Source: Penicillus capitatus (lineage: Eukaryota; Plantae; Chlorophyta). From it: a stretch of 64,000 nt of DNA. The translations under genes and the position numbers were made by a program. The stretch lies in NCBI GenBank assembly GCA_965649825.1, contig OZ287694.1, positions 991,197 through 1,055,196 of the forward strand, written 5' to 3'. Positions 5,513-53,800 of the stretch are shown here, one piece after another (within the stretch, counting starts at the first letter, position 1; the number at the start of each line of letters is the position of its first letter). The notes beneath the pieces are model-generated. The model searched no databases. It saw only the letters and a program-made list of their open reading frames with translations, and had not been told where the DNA came from.

Positions 5513-6070
5513 CTATCTCCGTGAGAACAGTGCTGCCGCCACTGCGCCAAATCCCGCAACAGCCACGACGCTGATGCCGACACCTAGACCGATCAGTCCT
5601 TCACGAATCAGTCCTTCCTCAACTAAACCCTTCAGCTCAGTAGCTTGACGAAAATTCGGCCATCGCTATGATGAAAAAACACTGTTCGCAGAATCGGCAG
5701 TCATTTTCAGTCCGCACTTCAAGAATGCCGTTGATCCGAGAGCGTGCTGAGAGGTAATGACCCATTCTGTACAGTCCAACTGCAATGACACATGTTCTGT
5801 TTTTACCGAAGGGTGTTAGAGAAGACTGGTGATACCTGCGATGTAGTACTCAGGCTCACGTGGTTCTGTTTCTTCCAGCCGGAGGAGCTGTTCGGCAAGG
5901 TCAACTCCGAGCTGTATCTTTGTCTTGTCTTTGGCGTGGACGAGGGACCAGGCTAGACGATGCTGTGCTTCGCGCACTTGGTCGACTGCTTCCTGTCGAA
6001 CCGCGTTGGAGTACTCCACTTGAGCCTGCGCGACCATTTCATTGTCTACCTCTGGAAGCTCGTAACGCAT
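5513..6070 (-). CDS. FIS1: Mitochondrial/peroxisomal fission protein FIS1 (3 exons)
   Basis: LAWSLVH...IQLGVDL..LL...REPEYYIAVGLYRMGHYLSAR TPR pattern; last exon RWPNFRQATELKGLVEEGLIREGLIGLGVGI... tail-anchor TM, RR-TAG. Confidence 0.9.
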
Positions 6071-7926
6071 GAGGATTGAACAAAATGCGCAAAAGAAATG
6101 ACTTAAATGCACACGAAAGAACAAGCTGATGTCGCGATCAAATCGGACAACGAAATCACTTTTGCTCTCATTGCGCTGATAAGCATATGTGCCGATGTCG
6201 ACAGGAATGAATAGTGCCAGTTTGATGATGAGCCATGATCGTGTTCTTCGGCAGCGAAACCCCTAGTCTAGTTTTTGTCGAATCTCGAATCGATCGATAG
6301 CAAACGATGGGCATCGTCGAACGCCGATAATAGGCTTCGAATCTTCTGATCGCTATCGCTGGATTTTGATTTGATCGATCGTCAATAATCGGTTTCGATC
6401 TCGTCGACTGCTATGGATTAATGTTGATAGTACTATGCGATAAGCCAACTTTGTTCGATGAAGCTGAGTGTCCGATTAAACCGATTGATCGCAAAGAGAG
6501 TTCTACGGGTCTTTCTTTGTCGGTCAAAGAATGGAACTGCTATGGCAACTGTAAATCTCAAGGTAACAATACCTTGGAGATCGATTTGCGACTTACGATC
6601 GGATCGAATGGCGTCCGCCGATCATCGATCATTTCCATGTCGTCATTTATGATTCGAAGGATTTCAATCGATCCTTCCGCAACTTCTAGACATATGAAAC
6701 AACGAACAGCAAGCACGCTATAATACCGCCGAACTCGTAGATTGTTTCTGTTGTCATCCGACAAGGCGATCGAGCAAGATCTTCAGCCCGCATAAGTAGC
6801 TAGTCAGGCTGGATAGTGAGCACGTTTCGATAAACATGTGAGGAATAGATAATAATGAAAGAGCATCTCCAAACGTGCGACTGAGTATTTGAAAGTTTTT
6901 GTTCTCCGGCGTGTGCGTTCGGTAGCGTTCACAAATACACACGATTGCCAATATATAATCGAATCAATCTACGATGTTCTTCGCGTTCGATCTCGTCGGC
7001 CGGCAGGCACTACTAATATCATGAATTTGGCGCACAGATGTTAAAAAGTTTGTTTCTTGTCGATCCTCTGTCGATGACAGACTTCACAACCTCAAAGCAG
7101 GTTCTACAATGAAAGTTTTGGTTGTCTATATTCTCCCTCCCATGCATTTTCACCTCTAGATCATCTTGGAGTGACGACAGAGCAATACTGCAACTAATAC
7201 TACCCACATCGAGATATGTCTCTTTAATCGTCAACTACAGAGCTCTTGTTGGTAATTAGCAGACGAGTAAAGTAATACCGAGATCATTTAAGGCTTCCAA
7301 GTGACTGCGATTTTCATCCGATTTCGTCGCAAAGTAAACTGCCTTTTGCCAATCGATAAGCGTCGAATAACAAAGCAGGAGAAACGTCGACGTATGGACA
7401 AAAGAGTTCCATTCGATCAAAACAGTGAGCGCCGCTGACGCGAACGAAAAAGCATCGATAACCGAACTGTGACAGCCATCGGCAATACTTGTTCGTCGAT
7501 GATGCGGCTGGATCTCTCCTTAGAAAAAGTACAGTATTCGTTGTCGGCTTGTTGAAGATTGTCAGGGGTAAAACCCTAAGGGTTGTGACTGTACGGCAAA
7601 GCCACCTTGTCGTCAGGCGTCTGTCAACATGCAAAGAGAACAGTCATTGAATTCACATCAATGCTTCGCAGAGCCGGAGATACTACGGATGACTCAAAGA
7701 ACCACCGCTGCTTAAAGGGAACCTTTCGTTGTAAAAACGCACTTACTAAAGAAGTTTGTTTCAGTTCGAACGGTACTTTTGCAACACGATTAGAGGCCCC
7801 ATCGAAGCGCGACGGACGACTGTTGGAGATCGATCGGTGTATTTTTGACAAATCGACAGTTGTGCTTGTTGTATAGAAAGATCTCGTGTTGGTGACTTGA
7901 CTGATCGATGTATATAAACTTAGTCT

Positions 7927-7988
7927 TCGATTATCTTACGGCCATCGATCGACTTCTATCGATTATCTTACGGCCATCGATCGACTTC
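7927..7988. repeat. Two tandem copies of a 30-nt sequence (period 32)
   Basis: tcgattatcttacggccatcgatcgacttc at 7927 and 7959. Confidence 0.9.
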
Positions 7989-8169
7989 GATGATTGCATT
8001 ATCGATTGAAGCGATTGCTCGATTGTCAAATCGTCCAGTGTGTTTCGTTGTCGCGCGATTCGATGGTGTCACTCGGGCCTAGTTGCATGATACAATGTTC
8101 AATATGATGAATATCTATCTTTTCTTCCCTGGCACGCAGAAGCTCGCTACCACTCGTGCACTTTACAGG

Positions 8170-10324
8170 TCATCTAGGATCGTAGTCCATATCATAGTTT
8201 ATGCGTTTAAATGTGGTGGATGGCAGATAATGAACACGCCGTGGCATGGATTGGGCCGTCGACACGTTTGTCTGTGTCATTGCGGGTTTTGGATGCCAGT
8301 GTTGAGTTGTGGATTCACGTCGGAAATAGCTGTTTTCCGTCTGAATTCCTTTGATCTTTTCATTTCTTTTGCGAATTACACACAGAGCCCTGAACCACAT
8401 GTAAGCATGAAGTCAAGCATGCTTTGTGAACCATCACCTTTTCCGGACGTTCCATAGATTCCAATCGTACTTCGCGTTTATGCAGCGATCAATGAAGTGT
8501 ACGGGTGTTTGAGATTCGGCGTCACACATACGACATTCCTCAGATAGCTGTTGGACGATGGCGTCAACGTCAAATTGATTTTCTAGTCTACTGCCAAATC
8601 TCAATACGCAAGCAAACATAGGCTCTTGTTCCAACAGCATCTCTGCGGCCTGCTACATAGCAATGCTCTCGCGCTGATAGAATGCTGATGCGGAACTAAA
8701 AGATGGGCGTCTGGATCGTTGTCGAATGCACATTTGCATTCCGTACTGCAGAATCTGAGAAAGTATTCGCCGTTCGTTCGTCGATCGAACTCCTTCGAAG
8801 CGAGCGTCAATCGACCGTTTTCGCTGGTGAATGTTACGAAGCAGAAATTTTCCTCTTCGCATCGTCGGCTACTCGTCCACGTCGCATCGCGATCTGCGTC
8901 TGCTCGTTTCGTGCCATTCATTTGTGGACGACAGTCCTAAACGCTTTCAACTGCGCGGCACTGAAGAAGATCGCGACATGTACTCACCTCAAGCCAAGAT
9001 TGTCTTCTTGTCAAGATAGACAATGAATTCAGCGATGCTGTTATTTTTTCGAATGTCTCCTGCAATCTAATCAGTTGTGTATTCAGATCGCCAAGCCGTT
9101 CAAATGCACGAGCGACATCCACTCTTGCAACGTACTCCTCGTTTTCCATCAATTGATCGAGCTTTTCGAGAGCTCTTTTCTTCGATTCGTCAATTTGAAA
9201 TTTTGATTCCTGCAGATCCGTCTGTGAGAGTCCCGACAGCAAATGGTCACTTATACCAGCATTCGCCGGAGCTGTTGGCAATGGCTTGCGTATTGCAAGT
9301 AACAGGACCAGGCGGCGATCATCTTCAGACAGGCGAATTCTTTCTCAGATGTCCGATCGCTGCGGCCGTAAACTTCACTCCAATACTCGCCGCATTGTCG
9401 CCATCGATCCGTTCCCCGCTCTCCGCACTCGGCCATTTCAGCAAGACACTTCGCGGAAAAGGGCGATTCGTCTTCGTCTCTCGCCTGCGAGTATTGTAGC
9501 ATCCCAAGAGTCGTGTGCACCATCGTCTGATCTCAAGAAAAAGAGTCTGGATGTGAATGCAGCAGATGCACAACCATGAGTCGATTTCGTTTGTGTTCTC
9601 TGTCCAGAAGCAAGTAGGCTGTCCAGGAAGAAGCTGCATACGTTTCGTCTAACAGTGCAACGTAGGCGTCCACAATGTCTGGACGCAAAACGACCATCAA
9701 CCTCGCAACCTGTCAACCCAACATATGAACCGCGAGCAGTAAGGGACTAAACCTTTTGTTTCAGCTGGGAAAAATCTTTCTCTTCTGTTAAACTCATGTC
9801 CAGAATCTCTGCCATGGCGATCCCAACGCCGTTCTCTCAATTTCTGGCGTCTTACCGTCTTCTAGTGACGATCGGCTCTTCCGAAATCGTTCGTTCTCGG
9901 CCACGAGACTGTTTTTCTGCGCCTTTTTGATCTTAGCCAGTTCCATCTGCAATCGGCGATCCGATCGACGCACATGGCGACGAGATAGAACTAGCAATTG
10001 CCTGGAGACTCAATGCCGATAACAGCTCCTGAGATGCAGATTCGAAACGTTCTCTGATCGCTTGCAGCGTAGGATCCATCAGATCTGTGCGTCCGCCCGC
10101 GTCCCGCAGAACCGTTTTCAGCGCCTTCGTCTCAACGTCATCATCATTATTGCGGAGCAGCCAGCGCTGGATCCAAATTCCGATCAGGACGACATCCATC
10201 TGCCTCGATTCATGTCTCCACACCACGACGATCGACACATGCGAGCGACCTGCGTTTCTCCATGGTATTTCTTCAGCCCCGATGCGATCGGCAGCAGGCT
10301 ATCGGTGACAGTGACAGGATGCAT
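8170..10324 (-). CDS. Multi-exon hypothetical protein with coiled-coil segments
   Basis: ATG 10324 (MHPVTVTDSLLPIASGLKKYHGETQ) spliced to MDVVLIGIWIQRWLL; further exons join across short introns (strong GTGAGT...TTTAG intron ending at ~8937); coiled-coil exon ESKKRALEKLDQLMENEE; no family recognised. Confidence 0.65.
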
Positions 10325-10445
10325 AATGATATTGACGGCACCCGTCATCCGGACTACGTTTCATGACCGGTTTCTGAATCTTTGCGTACACAGCGTCCGT
10401 TTGTGTACATTTTGCGTTTCTTCGTCTTCTTGTCGTTCGAAGCTA

Positions 10446-13062
10446 ATGGAGTCGACTGGGGTTATGTGTAGCGCTTATGCGCCAGTTCCGTGCGCGCGAC
10501 AGTACCTCACACTCTCTACCGTTCCTTTGCGTCGAGCGTCGACATCCTACACGCCTTTAAGCTTAGCGTCACGGCGACGCGCATCGACTAAGGGACGGCA
10601 ACCGCTCGCCATCTCTTGTTCTTTGACTGACCTCGGCGTCATCGATAACCTCAAAGAACTGAAATCGACTGTCGTCGACACGTGGAAGGAAGAGTATCAG
10701 AAATCAGCCAAGAACCTTAAAGGAGATCTGTTTGGCGGTTTTACAGCGGCAGTTGTCGCTTTGCCCCTGGCTCTCGCATTTGGCGTTGCTTCGGGTGAAA
10801 CGCACCTGGCGTCGATAAGCAAGGTCCAACGAGGGATGTACGTGCTGTAGGTGCTGGTCCGTTGGCTGGATTGTATGGCGCTACTTTCGCTGGTTTCTTT
10901 GCAGCGTTGTTTGGAGGGACACCTGCACAGGTTACGGGACCGACAGGTCCAATGACTGTCGTTGCAGCTTCTTTGTTCTCCACTTTCTCATCGGATCCTT
11001 CCATCGCCTTTTCTGTTGTTGTCCTCTCCGTAAGATCGTCCAGTGGCTGTCACACATCGGTTACACATATTTCTGTCTAAAGGGCATTCTCCAAATTGTC
11101 ATGGGAGCCATGAAACTGGGTAGATTTATCAGGTAACGTGCGCTCTTCGATATCGATGGCGACATCAGACCTGTCACTGTCAGATTGGTTCCTGCTCCTG
11201 TGATTTCTGGATTTATGTCTGGCATTGGCTGTATCATTCTGTCGACTCAACTTCTTCCTCTTTGTGGAATGCAAGCGGCTCCTAATGCTCTGGTACGCAT
11301 CTATGTTCGATCATGCTTCCGATGATTGACGCATCTGGTGTATGTGTCTCACAGAAAGCCGTTCAGGCTTTGCCATCTCTCATATCGAATATGAATATCC
11401 ACGCATTCTTTATTGGGGCAGTTTCTTTGGCTCTTTGTACTTTTACACCTAAGAAGATAACTCGGATCATACCAGGATCTCTGCTTGCATTAGCTGCAGG
11501 AACGGTTCTTACCATGGCAGCTGGATTCAGTAGGCTTCCCTTATTGATATGGCAATTCTTTTTCATGTATTCTGTTTCTAGACGTGCCACTGCTGGGACA
11601 CATTCCCACTCAGTTGCCGCTTCCATTGGCACTGAAGTTTCCCACAGCCTTGATGCCGTTGATGATGAAATCTGCTTTCATCCTGGCATTGTTGGGGACG
11701 ATTGACAGTCTTTTGACTTCCCTCGTGGCTGACAACCTAACAGAGACATACCATGATTCCGATCAGGAAATGATTGGACAGGGAATTGGAAATGCTCTGG
11801 CTGGATTATTTGGGGGCATTCCAAGCGCGGGTTCGAATCTCCACCTCTCTCTGTCATTATTCATCCATTCAGTGTCACGGCAGGAGCAACAATGCGCACC
11901 GTTGTGAATATTCGCTCGGGTGGACGTACACGTCTGGCGGGAATGGTGCATTCCATGCTTCTCCTGACGATCTTGATGGGAGGAGGTAGCCTGGCTAAGA
12001 ATATCCCGTTGGCAGCCTTGGCCGGTATTCTGATGAAGACTGGATGGGATATTATCGATAAGAGATTCATCGCACGTCTTTCAAAACTCCCTCCGGCCAC
12101 CGGCATTGTCATGGTCGGCCCATTTCTCGTTCTCTCACACGCATCTCACACTTTGATGTATGGCAGTGGACAGTATTGCTGACGACTGTATTTGTGGATT
12201 TGATTGTGGCGGTGGGTGCTGGATGTGTCCTCGCTTCGCTTCTCCTCGTCAACCAAATGTCCAGGACAGAAGTCCATCGATGCACGATCATCACAACAAA
12301 GAAAATCGATGCGGGTCATATTTTTAGCGACCTGTCTCAGTTGGAAAGGTCTCTCATCAAATCAGGTCCGAGCATTCCATTGTCCTTTGACTGTCGTCGT
12401 TCAAGCAGACATGCAGGTGGCGATCAATTGGGTGTGGTCAAAATGTATGGGTCTTTCACTTTCAGTGCGGCCAATGGAATTCTCCGAAAAGTCGTCCCGG
12501 CCATTCAACCACTAAAATCTGTCATTGTGGATCTCAGCAGCGTTTCTCTTATGGATGGAGATGCCGTCTTGGCTATCGAACAACTTGCCCAAAAGTAACC
12601 TCTGTGCTTTCTTTCCATGGATCATATCTGCCTTCTAGAGCGATGTCTGAGAAAAAATGTTTCATGATCTGTGGTGCCTCTGACGAGATTTGTGCACTCA
12701 TGAAAAAGAGCGGACTGACAGCAGAGCTGCCTGTGGAACCTTCTACAGATCGCACACGGTGCTTGTATGAAGCATTGGCCGAAATATGTGATGTCACCCC
12801 GCTGCCATCCGATATCGATCCAAATCTGAATAACGCTGTCAAGCTAAGATCTACTGTCTGGACACCGCCTATGACTCTGCCTGTCGTCTCCGACTCTGAT
12901 GAAGTACCCACCACAGTCTCTCTGGGCCGTGGAATGGATGTTGTGTTTAGGTGGGTGACCAGATCCAACCTTCCGAGTAGATGGCCTTCCAAGTCTATGC
13001 AGCATTCAGATAAGAGCCAAAACCTCAAGAAAGACCTTTCACAACACATTTGTTGCTGGTAA
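10446..13062 (+). CDS. SulP/SLC26 anion transporter of the cyanobacterial BicA-like type, with STAS domain and N-terminal transit-peptide-like extension
   Basis: GDLFGGFTAAVVALPLALAFGVASGAGPLAGLYGATFAGFFAALFGGTPAQVTGPTGPMTVV; ISGFMSGIG; IDSLLTSLVADNLT..HDSDQEMIGQGIGN; GATMRTVVNIRSGGRT; STAS (YGSFTFSAA...VIVDLSSVSLMDGDAVLAIE); many short introns. Confidence 0.92.
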
Positions 13063-15492
13063 TGTGATCATAGCTTTCTGTATTTTTGCGAGCTCGTAAA
13101 AGCTGCCAAACAAAGCTTCTCTTCGAAGGGGTTACTGTCGAGACGGTGGCGTCCGTTACTTATTCAAAAGGAAGCCACATATTGTTATACGGTCTGTCTA
13201 TTGTTTGTCTCAAGTAGATGATATACTCTGACTGAGTACAACAATTACCGGAGAGTTGTCGATTGCTGCTGTTGTTGGACCAAAAGTGTAGCTGTTGTCT
13301 TTTGTGCATGGTGTGAGAGAGACGTGACGGCACCTTCTTTGTGTCATTCATGTTGATTGATGGTTGGTCGTATGATGTGAGTGAATGTGTGAGCATTGTT
13401 GCGTGCGTACGCGCGTTTCGATCGTCGGGCGCAGAGAACGATATGGACTCACTCCTAAAGGCTCCATAGTATTGATAACACACACATTACTCAGTTTAGC
13501 GCCCTCCCATCAGTTATTTACTTTATCATTTGCCTTTGCAAATGGTGCAGATGCACTAAGAAGGGAATGAAAGGCTGCAGGATACAACCTTTGTGTTTCA
13601 GTTATGTGACTTCCTTCGATCAGTGTCTTGTTTCAGATGAACTAGAGCATTATCACTCTTGCAGACAGACTCAGAAAACAGACTTAAAAAATGCAAAACG
13701 CGGATTCAATCTAAGTGATGCCGAGCATCCATTGAGGAGGAACGGGAAGGCCTTCCTTGCATGCAATCTGAATGACTAACAACAAGCGGCGGTCCTTCAA
13801 TGAGTCTACAGAGACAAGTTGAGAGATTTGACTAGATTCATCTGTGGAAACGTCTTGTGAACGTGACAAGAAGAATCTGATTCCAAGAAGAAGAAAAACC
13901 AAACAGTGTTGTAGAGAGCATTATGCACAACAACGTCCATCCACCAGTACTCAAACTGTTCAGTGACGGATTCCATTGAATAACTTCACACATGAACAAA
14001 AAAGAGGATGTACGTACGTACGATATGGAAAGAGAGACAAACAGCCAACATACCTTTCTGCAAAGTCATCCTTGTTAAATAATCACCCGACATTGCTGCT
14101 TTTCTTGAGCAGAGAGCAAAGAGCCAAAACAAAATCTTCTAACAGCAAAACAAACGAATAACCTTGTTCGAAGTTCCAACGTCCCGTTTCCCATGTTTAT
14201 GTTTACTATTTGTTTGTTTTTTCTGTTTTTGTGTGGACGGCTTATCAATTACCCGCGAACTTCGGCAGATTGCGTCGTGATGACAGACAGATCTGCACTC
14301 CATTGAAATAGGAAATGGATGTATTCTTGGACAGTCAAAATGAAAAATGCAGCTGGTGATTAAGAGGCGTCTTCTTGGGAATTAACAACACAGACGGTCA
14401 GTCAATAGACCTATTCTATCACAATTCAATACTGGCTTGATCATTCGTCATAAATGTTGCCATTCTAATCATAACCCAAGGATGACGCTCCATGCACATC
14501 TAGGGAGGGACTTCAGACACAGCCTTCACACCCTAATAAAGGCCAGCGCACTTGGTGTCTTGACAAATTGTTTCGTCGACGAAGCAGTAACAACAACAAA
14601 AAGCTAAGGAAGGACATACACCCACTGATATATGCTGCTGATCATCATCAATGATCCATCCATCCTTGCCACAGTCCCATACATCCATTCCACATTAGGT
14701 TCATGAAATCAGGACAAAGACGAGCAAAGGGTCATCATGTATTCAGACGCGAACGGTGCTGATGGCATCTGAAGAATCATCAAAAAACACAGATCAATCG
14801 GAAGAGTCTTCCTCCCCAAAGAGAACAAACAGTTCCATGATTTCGTGTTCTCATCTTTTTCAGCACACATCTTAGAACTGAAGCCAATATCATTATCATC
14901 ATGATCATCGGTGAAAATGCAATCTGCGTCAAGGAAGACAGGCTCTAACTGACTCAGTGTATACAGTTTATGATCTTTTTCAGCGGCACTGTACAATCAC
15001 TGAGCAAGAGAGATTCCATGGTCATTCATCGTTCTTGCACAAGGGTTTGGCTAAGCAGGGATATGCTTTTGACGAAAACAGTGTTTTCTTATGAACACGC
15101 TCAAACATGAGCGCCCTTCTGCAGCTTATTTACCACAGATTCAGAATTCTTTGAAGCAACCAACACGTCAAGTGTCCAGTACGACCACCATCACAAACAA
15201 GAGCACAAAGAAGGGAGATCATGTACAAGCAGTTCTCTTCAAAAGCTCGAAATACGAGAGCGGGTGGTTTTTAATGCACCAGTAATCCACTAAGAAAGGA
15301 GGAACTACGACAGTAATGATGCCGCTCTCAGAAAGGATTCCCATGTCAAATCCATTGAAGATTGAGTATCTGAGGAGGCGGCCTCTGGGATATCTGAATG
15401 TTTTGGCATTGTTGCACGCATCATCATCATGATTTCAGATACCCAGCAAGCAAGTACAAACAACAAGCGCAAGAGCAATTGCATTCACTGCG

Positions 15493-28617: not shown

Positions 28618-28688
28618 GACCATCATCACGAATGAGAATATTGGACACACACTGCTTGAACGCTCATTGTTTTGAATCAAACGTTCTC

Positions 28689-30455
28689 ATGTTGTCTAAG
28701 CGACTATTGAGTGATACAGAGAATCTTGTGCAGGAGAGCTTGGAGGGGTTGTGCATTGCGGCCCCTCACCTGCGTCTCTTGGACGGCTTTCCTCATTTCA
28801 AAGTCGCACTCGACGCGGAACACAACCGACACCGCCACGTGGCATTAATTTCGGGTGGCGGGAGTGGACATGAACCCGCCTTTGCCGGCTACGTTGGTAC
28901 AGGAATGCTGACCGCCGCCGTCTGCGGAGATATCTACGCCGCACCATCGGCAGAAGCGATCCTGTCCGCCATCCGTAGCGTCACTGGCGATGCGGGATGT
29001 CTTCTCCTGCCGATAAACTACACGGGAGACCGTCTGAATTTCGAGAAGGCGCAGGAGAGAGCACGGGCGTTGGGATATTGCGTCGAGACGGTTCTCATTG
29101 ACGACGATTGCGCTGTGGTGGACACAGGTTCTGTTGGACGGCGCGGTCTGGCAGGATCAGTTCTCTTGATCAAACTCGTGGGGGCCCTTGCGCAGAGGGG
29201 AGGGTCGCTGAATGCATTGACTGCGTTTGCTCAGAAAGCTGTGCGCAATTTGGGTACGATGGGCATCGGTTTGGATACCTGTGCTCTTCCTGGAGAACCG
29301 CGGTCGGCCTCCCGACTGCAACCGGATGAAATTGAGCTCGGACTTGGCATTCACGGGGAACCCGGTGTCCAGAAGATGCAAGATGTATCCTTGGACAGCG
29401 CTGTTGAGAAAATGGTCCGTTCCGTTACATCCTATCTACCATCTCCTTTCGTCAAGGACTCCAAAGTCGGCGTTCTGGTCAACAACTTAGGCGGAATGGC
29501 CGTGATCGATCTCAACGTTATTGGTAAGCGAACTGTGCAGACGCTGAGAGAAAAGTGTGACCTTGACGTCGATTTCATGCTCGCTGGGACATTCATGACG
29601 TCTGTGTCTGTGGCGGGATTCTCCATCACTCTGTTGAAAATGGAAGAGGAGGAGGAGAACGAGAAGTATATCGATTTGTTGAATGCGTCGACGGCGGCAG
29701 TGGCGTGGACACCGAAGCACATCTCTCCGTTTCGCCCGCAGCCAAAAATTCCACTGCCGTTCGCTGCAGAAGAAGAATATGTGGCCGAAGCATTGACGCC
29801 CTTGGGCAGTATTCATCGCAGATGTGTCGAAGCAGTGGTCGACTGCATGATCGCCAAGGAAGAGATCTTGAACGATTGGGATCGGCAAGTCGGAGATGGA
29901 GATTGTGGCTCGACACTTGCCAATGCCTGCAAAGCCATCCGCACAGACATGGACAGCGCTTATCCCTTCAACAGAGCCGTTTCGCTGCTCAGAGCCATTG
30001 GCCGTTCCATTGGACGCGCATCGGGCGGCACCTCAGGCAGTCTCTACCAAACATTGCTATATTCCGCTGCCGATTCCATGGAATCGACACCTGAAGATAT
30101 GACTGGCCTTGCTCGATGGGTCCGGGCATTTGAGAGTGGCGTCGAGGCTGTTCAAAAACAAGGTGGAGCACAGACGGGCGATCGAACGATGATTGATGCC
30201 CTCGAGCCGGCATCTCGTGCCCTCTCGTCATCCCTCGATGCGGGTGACACGATAGCGGCAGCTTTACAGAAGACGAGACGTGCCGCGGAGCAAGGTGCCG
30301 AGTCAACACTAGGCATGTTCGCCCGACGCGGCCGGTCGACCTACGTCTCCGCTGAACTCTACGCGTCCACGCCTGACCCTGGAGCAAAGGCTGTTGAATT
30401 CTGGATCTCTGCCCTCGTGGATTGTCTTCTCACAGAGACCGTCGGGAACAATTAG
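28689..30455 (+). CDS. DAK: Dihydroxyacetone kinase / triokinase (fused DhaK-DhaL), intronless
   Basis: ISGGGSGHEPAFAGYVGTGMLTAAV, NYTGDRLNF, VGRRGLAG, LGIHGEPG, VGDGDCGST, GDRTMIDAL, RRGRSTY, DPGAKAV; an extra in-frame ATG at 28632. Confidence 0.95.
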   Translation: MLSKRLLSDTENLVQESLEGLCIAAPHLRLLDGFPHFKVALDAEHNRHRHVALISGGGSGHEPAFAGYVGTGMLTAAVCGDIYAAPSAEAILSAIRSVTGDAGCLLLPINYTGDRLNFEKAQERARALGYCVETVLIDDDCAVVDTGSVGRRGLAGSVLLIKLVGALAQRGGSLNALTAFAQKAVRNLGTMGIGLDTCALPGEPRSASRLQPDEIELGLGIHGEPGVQKMQDVSLDSAVEKMVRSVTSYLPSPFVKDSKVGVLVNNLGGMAVIDLNVIGKRTVQTLREKCDLDVDFMLAGTFMTSVSVAGFSITLLKMEEEEENEKYIDLLNASTAAVAWTPKHISPFRPQPKIPLPFAAEEEYVAEALTPLGSIHRRCVEAVVDCMIAKEEILNDWDRQVGDGDCGSTLANACKAIRTDMDSAYPFNRAVSLLRAIGRSIGRASGGTSGSLYQTLLYSAADSMESTPEDMTGLARWVRAFESGVEAVQKQGGAQTGDRTMIDALEPASRALSSSLDAGDTIAAALQKTRRAAEQGAESTLGMFARRGRSTYVSAELYASTPDPGAKAVEFWISALVDCLLTETVGNN

Positions 30456-50838: not shown

Positions 50839-53800
50839 ATGACCCCGTACATTTCAGTTGCGGTCCCGGAATGTCGACTCGAGCGACAAGAGATATCCGA
50901 GTTGTTGGACGCGGCGACCCGAACGTGGACGATCGATAATGCTGCCCTGGAAAGGATGTCCAATGACATCAGTGCCGTCGTCAACTGCACGGCAAAGGAC
51001 GATGTCGTTCTTCTTCGCGTCGAAAGGGACATGCGATTTCCCGCTCGTGTGTTCGTTCCCTGGAATCTAACGTTGACATCCTACATCGAGAACGCCCAGA
51101 TGGAAGACGGCGTTCTCCCTCGGTCAGATGTCAAACTCGAATCCGTTGTCCGTCGAACGCCGGCGCCTTTGAGATCGGGTGATCACGCGTCTCGACTCGG
51201 TCTGTCGTACAAAGCATGGCTTTTGCAGGTCGCCGAGTGTCGCTCTTGCCAACCTCGTCTTCCAAGGGTGTGACCTAGAGGCCTCAGATGCATCCATCAT
51301 CAGAATCGCCAGCCAATGCGCTTCGGATGACGATGGACAAGGAGTGATCAAGTTGCACCACGTGACCTTCCGACGCAACACACTGAATGGATCCAAAGGT
51401 CTCTCGGCTACCCAGCCATCGTGCCCCTCTGTGGAAATGGTCGATGTTGTCTTCTTGGGCAATGCCTGTGGCGATCGGTGCTTTGCCGCACTTGCCATGC
51501 AGAATGTCCTGAACGGCATGGTCCTCCAGAGAAACAGACGGCTGTCTGACGGCGACTCGCCGATCGCGTTGATGTCGGCGCCGTCTGGATCCTCGACCAC
51601 CGTCTCCGGTCTGGTCGCAAGGTCCAATGAATTCTCGATTCTTCGCGCTGTGGAAAGCAACGTCGACATAGCAGACGCCGACATCGAAAAGAGTTCCAGA
51701 GATCCTCCCTTTGTGTTCGATCGTGCTGTGTCCGTCGTTGTCACCGACAGCTCCATTCGCAGAAATTCTGTCTCCCATTCCGGCGGTGCCATTCTCGCAA
51801 ATGCCACCGAGCTGCTCAGTATCTCCCGCTGCATCTTTGAGGGAAACGTCGCAGAGAGCGGTGCTGCCATCGCCTCCATCGATGGTAATTTGACGATCAG
51901 CAACTGCTCCTTCCACCACAACATTGCGAAGACGGATGCTGGAGCACTCCATCTGTCAAACGGTCGTTTGGAACTGCGCGCCTCCGTCTTTGAGAGCAAC
52001 AATGCTACCGGGAACGGAGGCGCAGTCTTCCTCCGAGAAAGCCGCCCTTCAACATTCTCCGAAGTGCAATGTCGCAACAACACGGCTGGAGATGGTGGGT
52101 GTCTGTCAGCGTCGGCCGCCAGGGAGCTCATCATCGAGAACTCCGCATTCGAAAACAATACGGCGACCAACGGAGGCGCCATTCGCTGTGATCGCATGTC
52201 TCTCGGCATGATTGCGAACTCGGTGATGAATAGGAACGTGGCTCTCGGCAAAGGCGGCGGCATCTCGTTGGTCGCATCTCCCAGAATGGAGATCCGCAAT
52301 TGCTCTCTGAATAACAATTCTGCCGAAGCGGGCGGTGGCCTCGACAGCCGATCGTCGCGAGACGTCATCGTAAATCGATGCACCTTCTCTGGCAATTCGG
52401 CTTCGCTCAATGGAGGCGGAGCATGGATCTTCGAACAGAGCAGCGTCCTTGTACAAGCATCGAACTGGACGATGAACCGCGCCGCGAGTAAAGGCGGCGG
52501 AATCGGCGTGGAGGAATCAAATCTCACGGCGCAGTCTTCGACCGTATCCCACAACACAGCTCAAGAAGGATCCGGAGTGAGAACCGAATTTGGAGATGTT
52601 GATCTGAATCAGGTCGCCTTGATCGGAAACCGTGCGTCGGCGTCAGGGGGCGGAATGACGATCCAGCACGGAAGAGCGACGATCGTAGACTGTCACATCG
52701 CACAGAACATTGCCAATGTCTTCGCCGGTGGACTCAATATCGCCAAGGCTCCCAGGGTCATCCAGAACACGACCTTCATTGAGAACAGCGCCCTCAACAA
52801 CCGTGGCGGTGGTCTGGCTTGTTTTGACAGCAATATGTCGATCGCAGATTCAGAATTCCGAGCAAACAAGGCCCACAGTAGTGGCGGCGCGTTTCATATT
52901 GTTTTCACTATGTTTGTCGCAGCAGAGAGGCTCATCATAAGAGATAATCAATGTACAATAGACGGCGGCGGAATCGGAATCGCTGAAAGGAGTGGACTCA
53001 ATATCTCCGACTCCACGATCCAGAACAACACCGCAGCACAGGGCGGTGCTATCTTCTGTCTCAACTCGACCGTCCATGCAACTGACTGCAACATCCATTC
53101 GAATCGTGCGACAAATGGAGGAGGGATTTTTGTCACCAAAGGTTCGAGGTTCTTCCTCGAGAACTCGACTTCCATCTCCAACAAGGCTCAGTCGATCGGT
53201 GGAGCGATAACGAGCTTCGGTGGTAGTACGACACGGATCAAGGCGGTGACGTTCTCAGACAACGAAGCACAAGGCAGTGGAGGATGTGCGCATGCCTAAG
53301 AATCGAGTGTCTTCGTGATAACAGATGCACGTATTGTTAGCGGTCGTGCGCACCAGGGTGGAGGGATCCATGCCCAATCAAACTCAGCAATCGCCCTCTA
53401 TGATAGCATCATCCGTAACAACACAGCGACAAAAGAGGGAGGCGGTTTGCTTCTGGATAGCTCTGAAGGGAATGTGAACGAGACGATCTTCGAGGGAAAT
53501 GTGGCGTCGATCGGAGGATCCATCATTATGAAGAATTCAAGCCTGCAACTAACGAAGTCTGTTCTCGAATATGATAGGGCCACTCTGGCTGGCGGGTCCA
53601 TTGCCGCGAATCAGAACAACTCGTTAATTATCCTGAAGACATCGCTTTTAAACACCAAAACGAAAAATGGCGGAAGCATTTGGCTTTCTGGGTCGACTCT
53701 CAATGCTAATGCGCTCAAGGTCTCTAATTGCGAGGCGAAGAAGGCAGGTGGGGCCATTTTTGCAAATGCCTCTTCCATTGTACTGTGTGCCAATTGCACC

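Follow-up and report, generated by a model that had tools for sequence, protein, structure and literature searches.

A bacterial-type SulP transporter with a presequence-like leader in the green alga Penicillus capitatus, and its possible role in plastid bicarbonate uptake

Which proteins carry bicarbonate across the plastid envelope of green algae, and could some of them have been recruited from bacteria? In Chlamydomonas, LCIA (NAR1.2) is the proposed chloroplast-envelope route for HCO3-; outside that genus, green-algal envelope bicarbonate carriers are, to our knowledge, largely unknown. The question is raised by a gene in a stretch of 64,000 nucleotides from Penicillus capitatus (contig OZ287694.1; hereafter the window), which the original prediction, made from the letters alone, described as a cyanobacterial BicA-like transporter with a plastid-targeting extension. 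The gene, referred to here as the SulP gene, encodes a protein that groups with unnamed proteins of other chlorophytes, resembles the cyanobacterial transporter BicA without being BicA in the strict sense, and carries a leader resembling an organelle presequence. We regard the structural and evolutionary statements on this gene as close to certain. The complete working model, in which a SulP of bacterial derivation resides in the plastid envelope and carries HCO3- with a coupling unlike that of cyanobacterial BicA1, is assigned a probability of about 0.45.

For the gene model, the interval 10300-13200 was translated in all three forward frames, and the coding pieces were connected across GT-AG introns. 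The gene runs on the plus strand from an ATG at 10446 to a TAA at 13060-13062 with an intact frame through 10 exons, giving a coding sequence of 2142 nt and a protein of 713 amino acids (aa), and is present in a single copy within the window.

10446..13062, + strand: whole SulP gene, 10 exons and 9 introns, with Pfam, NCBIfam and PDB matches
10446-10794, 10851-11029, 11083-11132, 11184-11292, 11355-11529, + strand: exons 1-5
11582-11830, 11884-12113, 12167-12365, 12417-12594, 12639-13062, + strand: exons 6-10

All nine introns are bounded by GT and AG and measure 44-62 nt. The weakest splice donor, GTCGGC, lies directly after 12113, and the splice choices, this one included, are validated by the gapless alignment to BicA at the exon junctions. 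A second in-frame ATG at 10326 would lengthen the protein by 40 residues, and several out-of-frame ATGs occur between 10262 and 10365; because none occurs between 10366 and 10445, a start at 10446 is favoured over one at 10326.

The protein harbors both domains of the SulP/SLC26 family, matching PF00916 with 272.6 bits (cut-off 23.2) and PF01740 with 36.2 bits (cut-off 22.6).

10716..12098, + strand: transmembrane transport domain, Pfam Sulfate_transp (aa 91-442), E = 5.7e-81, interrupted by introns 1-6
12428..12747, + strand: STAS domain, PF01740 (aa 518-609), E = 5.3e-9, spanning intron 9

Its best match among solved structures is the membrane domain of Synechocystis BicA (PDB 6KI1, residues 9-392, E = 1.9e-98), followed by the bacterial fumarate transporter SLC26Dg (1.7e-40), prestin (4.5e-28) and AtSULTR4;1 (PDB 7LHV, 1.6e-25), and its STAS domain matches the BicA STAS structure 6KI2 weakly. 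The best NCBIfam model is the BicA equivalog NF050096, with 477 bits, although the cut-off of 880 is not reached. Plant SULTR and animal SLC26 proteins (prestin, pendrin, SLC26A9) share the superfamily and the architecture, but they are much more distant (E = 1e-25 to 1e-6) and form a separate eukaryotic lineage; the similarity to BicA is far stronger. On these matches, with the one to 6KI1 settling the fold, the product is a bacterial-type SulP/SLC26 anion transporter of the broad subfamily that contains BicA, and not of the plant SULTR or animal SLC26 type. Family motifs include GDLFGGFTAAVVALPLALAFGVASG (from aa 93 onward), ALFGGTPAQVTGPTGPMTVV, ISGFMSGIG (aa 200), SLLTSLVADNLT (aa 330) and GATMRTVVNIRSGGRT. 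Much of the original prediction is thus borne out: every motif that it quoted is present, its interval extends exactly from ATG to stop codon, and it was right to see many spliceosomal introns, a eukaryotic algal host, a bacterial rather than a plant-type SulP subfamily and, before the core, an extension rich in Ser, Arg, Thr and Ala and poor in acidic residues, which measures 91 aa and is transit-peptide-like in composition.

Comparison with BicA at the substrate site reveals both conservation and a marked departure. Three segments of the transmembrane (TM) helices carry the relevant positions.

10937..10945, + strand: TM3 site codons G146-P147-T148; T148 corresponds to BicA T69, and G146 stands in place of the BicA1-specific E67
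11704..11718, + strand: TM8 site codons D329 to T333, matching BicA D258 and T262
11884..11897, + strand: TM10 motif (S)AGATMR; it includes A372 and T373, the equivalents of BicA A301 and T302, and R375, at the position of BicA1 G304

Five residues of the BicA pocket are kept, namely T148, D329, T333, A372 and T373. In BicA, T69, D258 and T262 are reported to belong to the binding site (Wang et al. 2019). A301 and T302 are reported bicarbonate/metal-site residues (PMC13588710). The TM10 motif itself reads SAGATMRTV, placing Arg375 where BicA1 has Gly304. A 2026 study distinguished BicA1 (GAGATMGTV) from BicA2 (GAGATMRTV) by this motif, implicated Gly304 of BicA1 in Na+ coordination, noted that Cl-/HCO3- exchangers carry Arg at the same position, and proposed that the Arg form of BicA2 needs activation or uses a different coupling (PMC13588710). 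Gly occupies this position in 120 of 120 BicA1 matches, and Arg in 106 of the 114 closest matches of the Penicillus protein. Similarly, every algal and nearby bacterial sequence has Gly where BicA1 has Glu67. The Arg-type motif, (G/S)AGATMRTV, is shared with BicA2 of Prochlorococcus and marine picocyanobacteria (PMC13588710), but the Arg form is common in non-cyanobacterial SulPs. No protein matching the numbering of BicA2-1986 (T71, R309) was present among the retrieved proteins, a set that takes in the nearest 120 clusters and, of the representatives, the nearest 150.

Membrane-domain identity follows the same pattern. For the Penicillus protein the value is 46.8% with Synechocystis BicA and 47.6% with P0252, which represents an early-branching BicA cluster of the Thermostichus type; it is 48.5% with a Selenomonadaceae SulP, 57-58% with proteins of Alphaproteobacteria and Nitrospirota metagenome-assembled genomes (MAGs) and 59.6% with the metagenome protein P0007. 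Among themselves, cyanobacterial BicA1 proteins share at least 80% identity. BicA1 of Synechocystis PCC 6803 and Synechococcus PCC 7002 (6KI1, 6KI2) shares with the Penicillus protein the fold, the transport domain and STAS, the core length and the pocket, whereas the latter adds a eukaryotic gene structure, a leader of 91 aa and a tail of 88 aa. Because of the score below the BicA cut-off, Arg375 and Gly146, the low identity and the failure to group with BicA1 in trees, the protein is, judged by these comparisons, BicA-like but not BicA in the strict sense.

The gene is not peculiar to the Penicillus genome. Among 5.8 billion proteins, the closest are those of Ostreobium quekettii (59%), a Logan transcript contig (57%) and Bryopsis sp. 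KO-2023 (54%), all unnamed products, followed by the trebouxiophytes Apatococcus and Symbiochloris (50%). The green-algal orthologues are deposited as hypothetical proteins; Bryopsis BSKO_09674 and the proteins of O. quekettii, Symbiochloris irregularis and Apatococcus fuscideae, at 50-59% overall identity, fall in the same clade as the SulP gene. A profile built from six algal orthologues and searched against 1.84 billion representatives added Pedinophyceae sp. YPF-701 (54% membrane-domain identity), the dinoflagellate Biecheleria cincta and two intron-poor eukaryotic metagenome contigs. In neighbour-joining trees (147 sequences, 523 columns, two sets of 200 bootstraps), the Penicillus protein, Bryopsis, Ostreobium and P0003 unite in 100% of replicates and the seven core algal sequences in 92-95%, and a group of Pedinophyceae, an Ostreococcus-like contig, a GC-rich picoeukaryote and the dinoflagellate is their sister in 62-83% of all 200 replicates. 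By this clade, the host alga lies nearest to the Bryopsidales.

Gene structure points in the same direction. Exact exon structures were mapped in three deposited genomes. The Penicillus gene and its Bryopsis and Ostreobium orthologues agree in having exons of 179, 50, 109 and 175 nt. In alignment column and phase, five introns coincide among these three and the trebouxiophyte Symbiochloris, and two further introns are common to the siphonous algae only. Algal monophyly together with shared intron positions indicates that the gene is a member of a chlorophyte clade comprising Bryopsis, Ostreobium, Symbiochloris and Apatococcus, to which the Pedinophyceae probably also belong. The homologue of Pedinophyceae sp. 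YPF-701 (locus L016, 8001-10665) contains four introns, all of them outside the positions that ulvophytes and the trebouxiophyte have in common; the common introns were therefore either gained after that divergence or lost from Pedinophyceae. The introns of the Penicillus gene are also far shorter than those of the algal orthologues (44-62 nt versus about 100-1600 nt), and one of them is found in this gene only:

11831..11883, + strand: intron 6, 53 nt, phase 1, specific to the Penicillus gene; it splits the G371 codon in the TM10 substrate-site motif

In its place, the genes of Bryopsis, Ostreobium and Symbiochloris carry an intron that lies 17 codons upstream, so that the displacement of intron 6 reflects local intron turnover. 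The two flanking exons total 479 nt either way. An intronless homologue (P0398) was also observed on an Ostreococcus-like contig (L015, 10001-11830; 59% GC) among plant-type neighbours with Senescence_reg and eukaryotic SMC domains, which suggests that the family reaches prasinophytes; its leader of 84 aa is rich in Ser, Thr, Pro and Arg. The Biecheleria homologue (P0294, EukProt) has 840 aa with the SulP core starting at about residue 324, falls with the green algae in most bootstrap replicates, and may represent a secondary transfer.

What might such a protein do? Location, substrate and coupling are the parts that we infer. The protein would be a homodimeric-type SulP/SLC26 transporter working by an elevator mechanism, with a 14-TM transport domain followed by STAS. 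An ancestral chlorophyte would have obtained the gene, with a non-cyanobacterial bacterium as the simplest donor, and passed it on vertically, introns and an N-terminal presequence of 80-107 aa being gained after acquisition. By means of the presequence the protein would reach an organelle membrane, the plastid inner envelope being the most probable one, and would keep its bacterial orientation there with STAS facing the stroma; with that topology retained, uptake into the bacterial cytoplasm would become uptake into the stroma. A small oxyanion would be moved into the stroma, HCO3- being the leading candidate, an assignment that we make tentatively and hold at somewhat less than even odds. 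Since Arg375 occupies the place of the Gly at the BicA1 Na+ site, Na+ symport of the BicA1 type is improbable, and transport would more likely proceed independently of Na+, by exchange or uniport, or require activation. The role proposed for LCIA is the same, but LCIA belongs to an unrelated family of the formate/nitrite transporter type and is a functional analogue only. More speculative, and in our view unlikely to hold in full, is the extension of this scheme to chlorophytes from prasinophyte-like picoplankton to siphonous seaweeds, though apparently not Chlamydomonas, in which a non-cyanobacterial SulP fitted with a transit peptide would be the plastid-envelope entry step for HCO3-, with an Arg-type coupling unlike that of BicA1 (Na+-independent or regulated).

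Genomic neighbours provide circumstantial links between this clade and inorganic carbon. In Bryopsis sp. KO-2023 (BSYQ01000008.1; locus L009), a Na_H_Exchanger gene (PF00999, 907-5533, minus strand) stands head-to-head with the orthologue (6001-10077, plus strand), and BicA-like genes of Nitrospira marina have been reported adjacent to Na+/H+ antiporters. A 70%-GC, intron-poor picoeukaryote contig (L012) encodes an LCIB-type carbonic anhydrase (PF18599, 142-1065) 7 kb from the homologue P0272 (8001-9632), an intronless gene whose product has Leu, neither Arg nor Gly, at the TM10 position. HCO3--active SulP transporters have also been reported in autotrophic Proteobacteria (PMC10880623).

Several observations weigh against the proposed role in plastid bicarbonate uptake. 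A search of the window for Na+/H+ exchanger (NHX) and LCIB homologues found neither, and no carbonic anhydrase or other CO2-concentrating mechanism (CCM) genes lie near the bacterial relatives in the four neighbourhoods examined. The native Arg-type BicA2 of Prochlorococcus CCMP1986 showed no HCO3- uptake in Escherichia coli until the R309G change was introduced (PMC13588710). In Richelia, a SulP that retains each of the six bicarbonate-site residues failed to complement a mutant in inorganic-carbon uptake (PMC12596568), so that conservation of the pocket is insufficient for activity. Neighbour joining was the only tree method, and BicA1 was the BicA reference in the trees; the nearest bacterial relatives are for the most part metagenome proteins that carry neither name nor taxonomy. 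Finally, the composition of the leader is the pattern expected of organelle presequences and would fit a plastid and a mitochondrion alike.

The alternative that survives best is a SulP for another anion, such as sulfate, molybdate, chloride or a C4-dicarboxylate, acting in an organelle or elsewhere and unrelated to carbon concentration. The anions transported within SulP/SLC26 are diverse (PMC10880623), the MOT1 molybdate-transporter Pfam model also matches some close bacterial relatives, and the Penicillus protein is matched by the NCBIfam models for the C4-dicarboxylate transporter DauA (NF008660) and for generic sulP. The failed HCO3- assays of the Arg-type BicA2 and of the site-conserved Richelia paralogue, and the four bacterial neighbourhoods devoid of a CCM link, speak for it as well. 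However, the DauA match reaches 273.8 bits against a cut-off of 614 and compares with 477 bits for the BicA model, and the generic sulP match stays below that model's own cut-off. In addition, the Ala-Thr pair of the BicA pocket is retained along with its Thr, Asp and Thr residues, and the NHX and LCIB neighbours in two algae point to inorganic carbon. Transport of some other anion therefore appears unlikely, yet it deserves serious weight.

The placement in a plastid depends on the leader, and an alternative reading treats this segment as a cytosolic regulatory domain of a transporter in the plasma membrane or tonoplast, serving, for example, HCO3- uptake from seawater.

10446..10715, + strand: N-terminal extension (aa 1-90); aa 1-60 presequence-like, aa 61-90 charged, before TM1

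The SulP core starts at residue 92. Within the first 60 aa, Ser and Thr make up 26.7%, Arg 11.7% and Ala 11.7%, whereas Asp and Glu together account for 1.7%, a single acidic residue; a hydrophobic signal-peptide core is absent. In 113 bacterial relatives and BicA1, the segment before the core has a median length of 12 and a maximum of 25 residues. The full-length eukaryotic members carry leaders of 80-107 aa (Bryopsis 96, P0003 80, P0004 107, Pedinophyceae 95, the Ostreococcus-like homologue 84), which are mutually unalignable but alike in being poor in acidic residues and enriched in Ser, Thr, Arg, Ala, Gly or Pro. Extensions of this kind, which differ in sequence but resemble each other in composition in at least five eukaryotic relatives, are the usual signature of targeting peptides and argue against a non-organellar site. 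Residues 61-90 are charged, helix-like and not transit-peptide-like, which a regulatory segment would explain; they probably form part of the mature protein. BicA-like proteins of Chara have been modelled at the plasma membrane (PMC12222935). On balance, a non-organellar location seems improbable, and we consider the plastid the reasonably probable destination.

The origin of the gene bears on a further possibility, that the protein came from the cyanobacterial endosymbiont as a genuine BicA, working as a Na+-dependent symporter of HCO3-, and is sent to the plastid. In favour of this, BicA ranks first among the solved structures and among the NCBIfam models, five residues of the binding site are kept, and a presequence-like leader is present. 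The score of 477 against 880 bits, R375 for G304 and G146 for E67 nevertheless speak against it, as does an identity to BicA that is no higher than the value for the Selenomonadaceae SulP and lower than those for the Alphaproteobacteria and Nitrospirota MAG proteins and P0007, in a family where BicA1 members share at least 80%. In the trees, for which four distant bacterial loci with 34-40% identity to the SulP protein served as outgroups only, the named BicA1 proteins are monophyletic in 100% of replicates, the smallest clade that unites them with the algae contains at least 25 taxa (median 63), and BicA1 was never the sister of the algal clade in either set of 200 bootstraps. No named cyanobacterial protein occurs in the 120 closest clusters, though cyanobacterial entries are usually named. 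A cyanobacterial BicA symporter is thus highly improbable. The label 'cyanobacterial' of the original prediction and membership of the Na+-dependent BicA family find no support in these scores, residues and identities, and the phylogeny with BicA that had been proposed as a check never placed the protein with BicA1.

The nearest prokaryotic relatives that bear names are Alphaproteobacteria, Nitrospirota and Gammaproteobacteria MAGs and Sulfurimonas/Thiomicrolovo (Campylobacterota). With 51-60% membrane-domain identity, these nearest bacterial SulPs carry Gly and Arg at the positions of BicA1 residues 67 and 304, as the Penicillus protein does, but have neither presequence nor introns; several come from lineages that contain autotrophs, whose BicA-like SulPs are proposed inorganic-carbon transporters. 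Two unnamed bacterial relatives (P0087 and P0066) lie in proteobacterial-like neighbourhoods, one with system-I cytochrome c maturation and chemotaxis genes and the other with GGDEF/EAL and type II secretion genes. Because the nearest relatives are non-cyanobacterial and named cyanobacterial proteins are missing from the closest clusters, horizontal transfer from a non-cyanobacterial donor is favoured over endosymbiotic transfer; of the two routes that the original prediction had left side by side, the horizontal one is retained and the endosymbiotic one disfavoured. The simplest reading of the sequence comparisons is one old acquisition in Chlorophyta followed by vertical descent, with introns gained before the ulvophyte/trebouxiophyte split.

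Bacterial contamination or a dead pseudogene, for which only the bacterial affinity of the protein speaks, can practically be dismissed in view of nine canonical introns at conserved positions, a frame open throughout and eukaryotic flanking genes (mTERF, PHD-finger, SMC). Open reading frames (ORFs) near the SulP gene encode mTERF, PHD-finger, SAND, SMC and Dak1/Dak2 domains, and by its gene content the window is eukaryotic nuclear DNA; a nuclear eukaryotic location of the SulP gene itself follows from its spliceosomal introns and from the Bryopsis and Ostreobium orthologues with the same exon sizes.

The SulP/SLC26 family is already known, but the picture of a chlorophyte clade with presequence, shared introns, Arg-type site and non-cyanobacterial affinity appears to be undescribed in the literature searched. 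That search found no paper linking BicA to chlorophyte algae; in a 2026 review of CCMs BicA figures solely as a cyanobacterial protein, and the only related mentions are BicA-like genes of the streptophyte Chara (PMC12222935) and SLC26 candidates of diatoms. Cyanobacterial BicA in crop chloroplasts has been held back by mistargeting or inactivity (PMC8438413). A BicA-like transporter already adapted to nuclear encoding and organelle import in several green-algal classes would be a concrete candidate both for an envelope carrier and for engineering, and, should this one indeed carry HCO3- into plastids, evolution would already have produced what chloroplast engineers have sought with BicA. The replacement of Gly by Arg at the Na+ site offers a direct test of coupling differences within the BicA-like subfamily. 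If the protein carries sulfate or another anion instead, the gene would represent an ordinary old bacterial gene transfer.

Two remaining features flank the conserved part of the gene.

12796..13059, + strand: C-terminal tail, 88 aa (aa 626-713), with a counterpart in no relative
10239..10445, no strand assigned: intergenic stretch, presumed promoter and 5' untranslated region, common to the SulP gene and the divergent upstream gene

The tail is present in the Penicillus protein and not in the algal orthologues. Across this region the SulP frame is open for 88 codons, and the other two frames contain 4 and 6 stops; the tail is probably coding. Upstream, coiled-coil-like ORF pieces at 9794-10238 on the minus strand mark a divergent gene that begins about 210 bp from the SulP ATG, and this spacing implies a short promoter region shared by the two genes. 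An Rfam search of the window returned no match. Elsewhere in the window, two intronless ORFs on the plus strand were observed amid an otherwise intron-rich region: one at 28632-30455 encodes a 607-aa dihydroxyacetone kinase (Dak1 and Dak2), and the other at 51179-53299 encodes a 706-aa protein with repeats of the Chlamydia PMP type.

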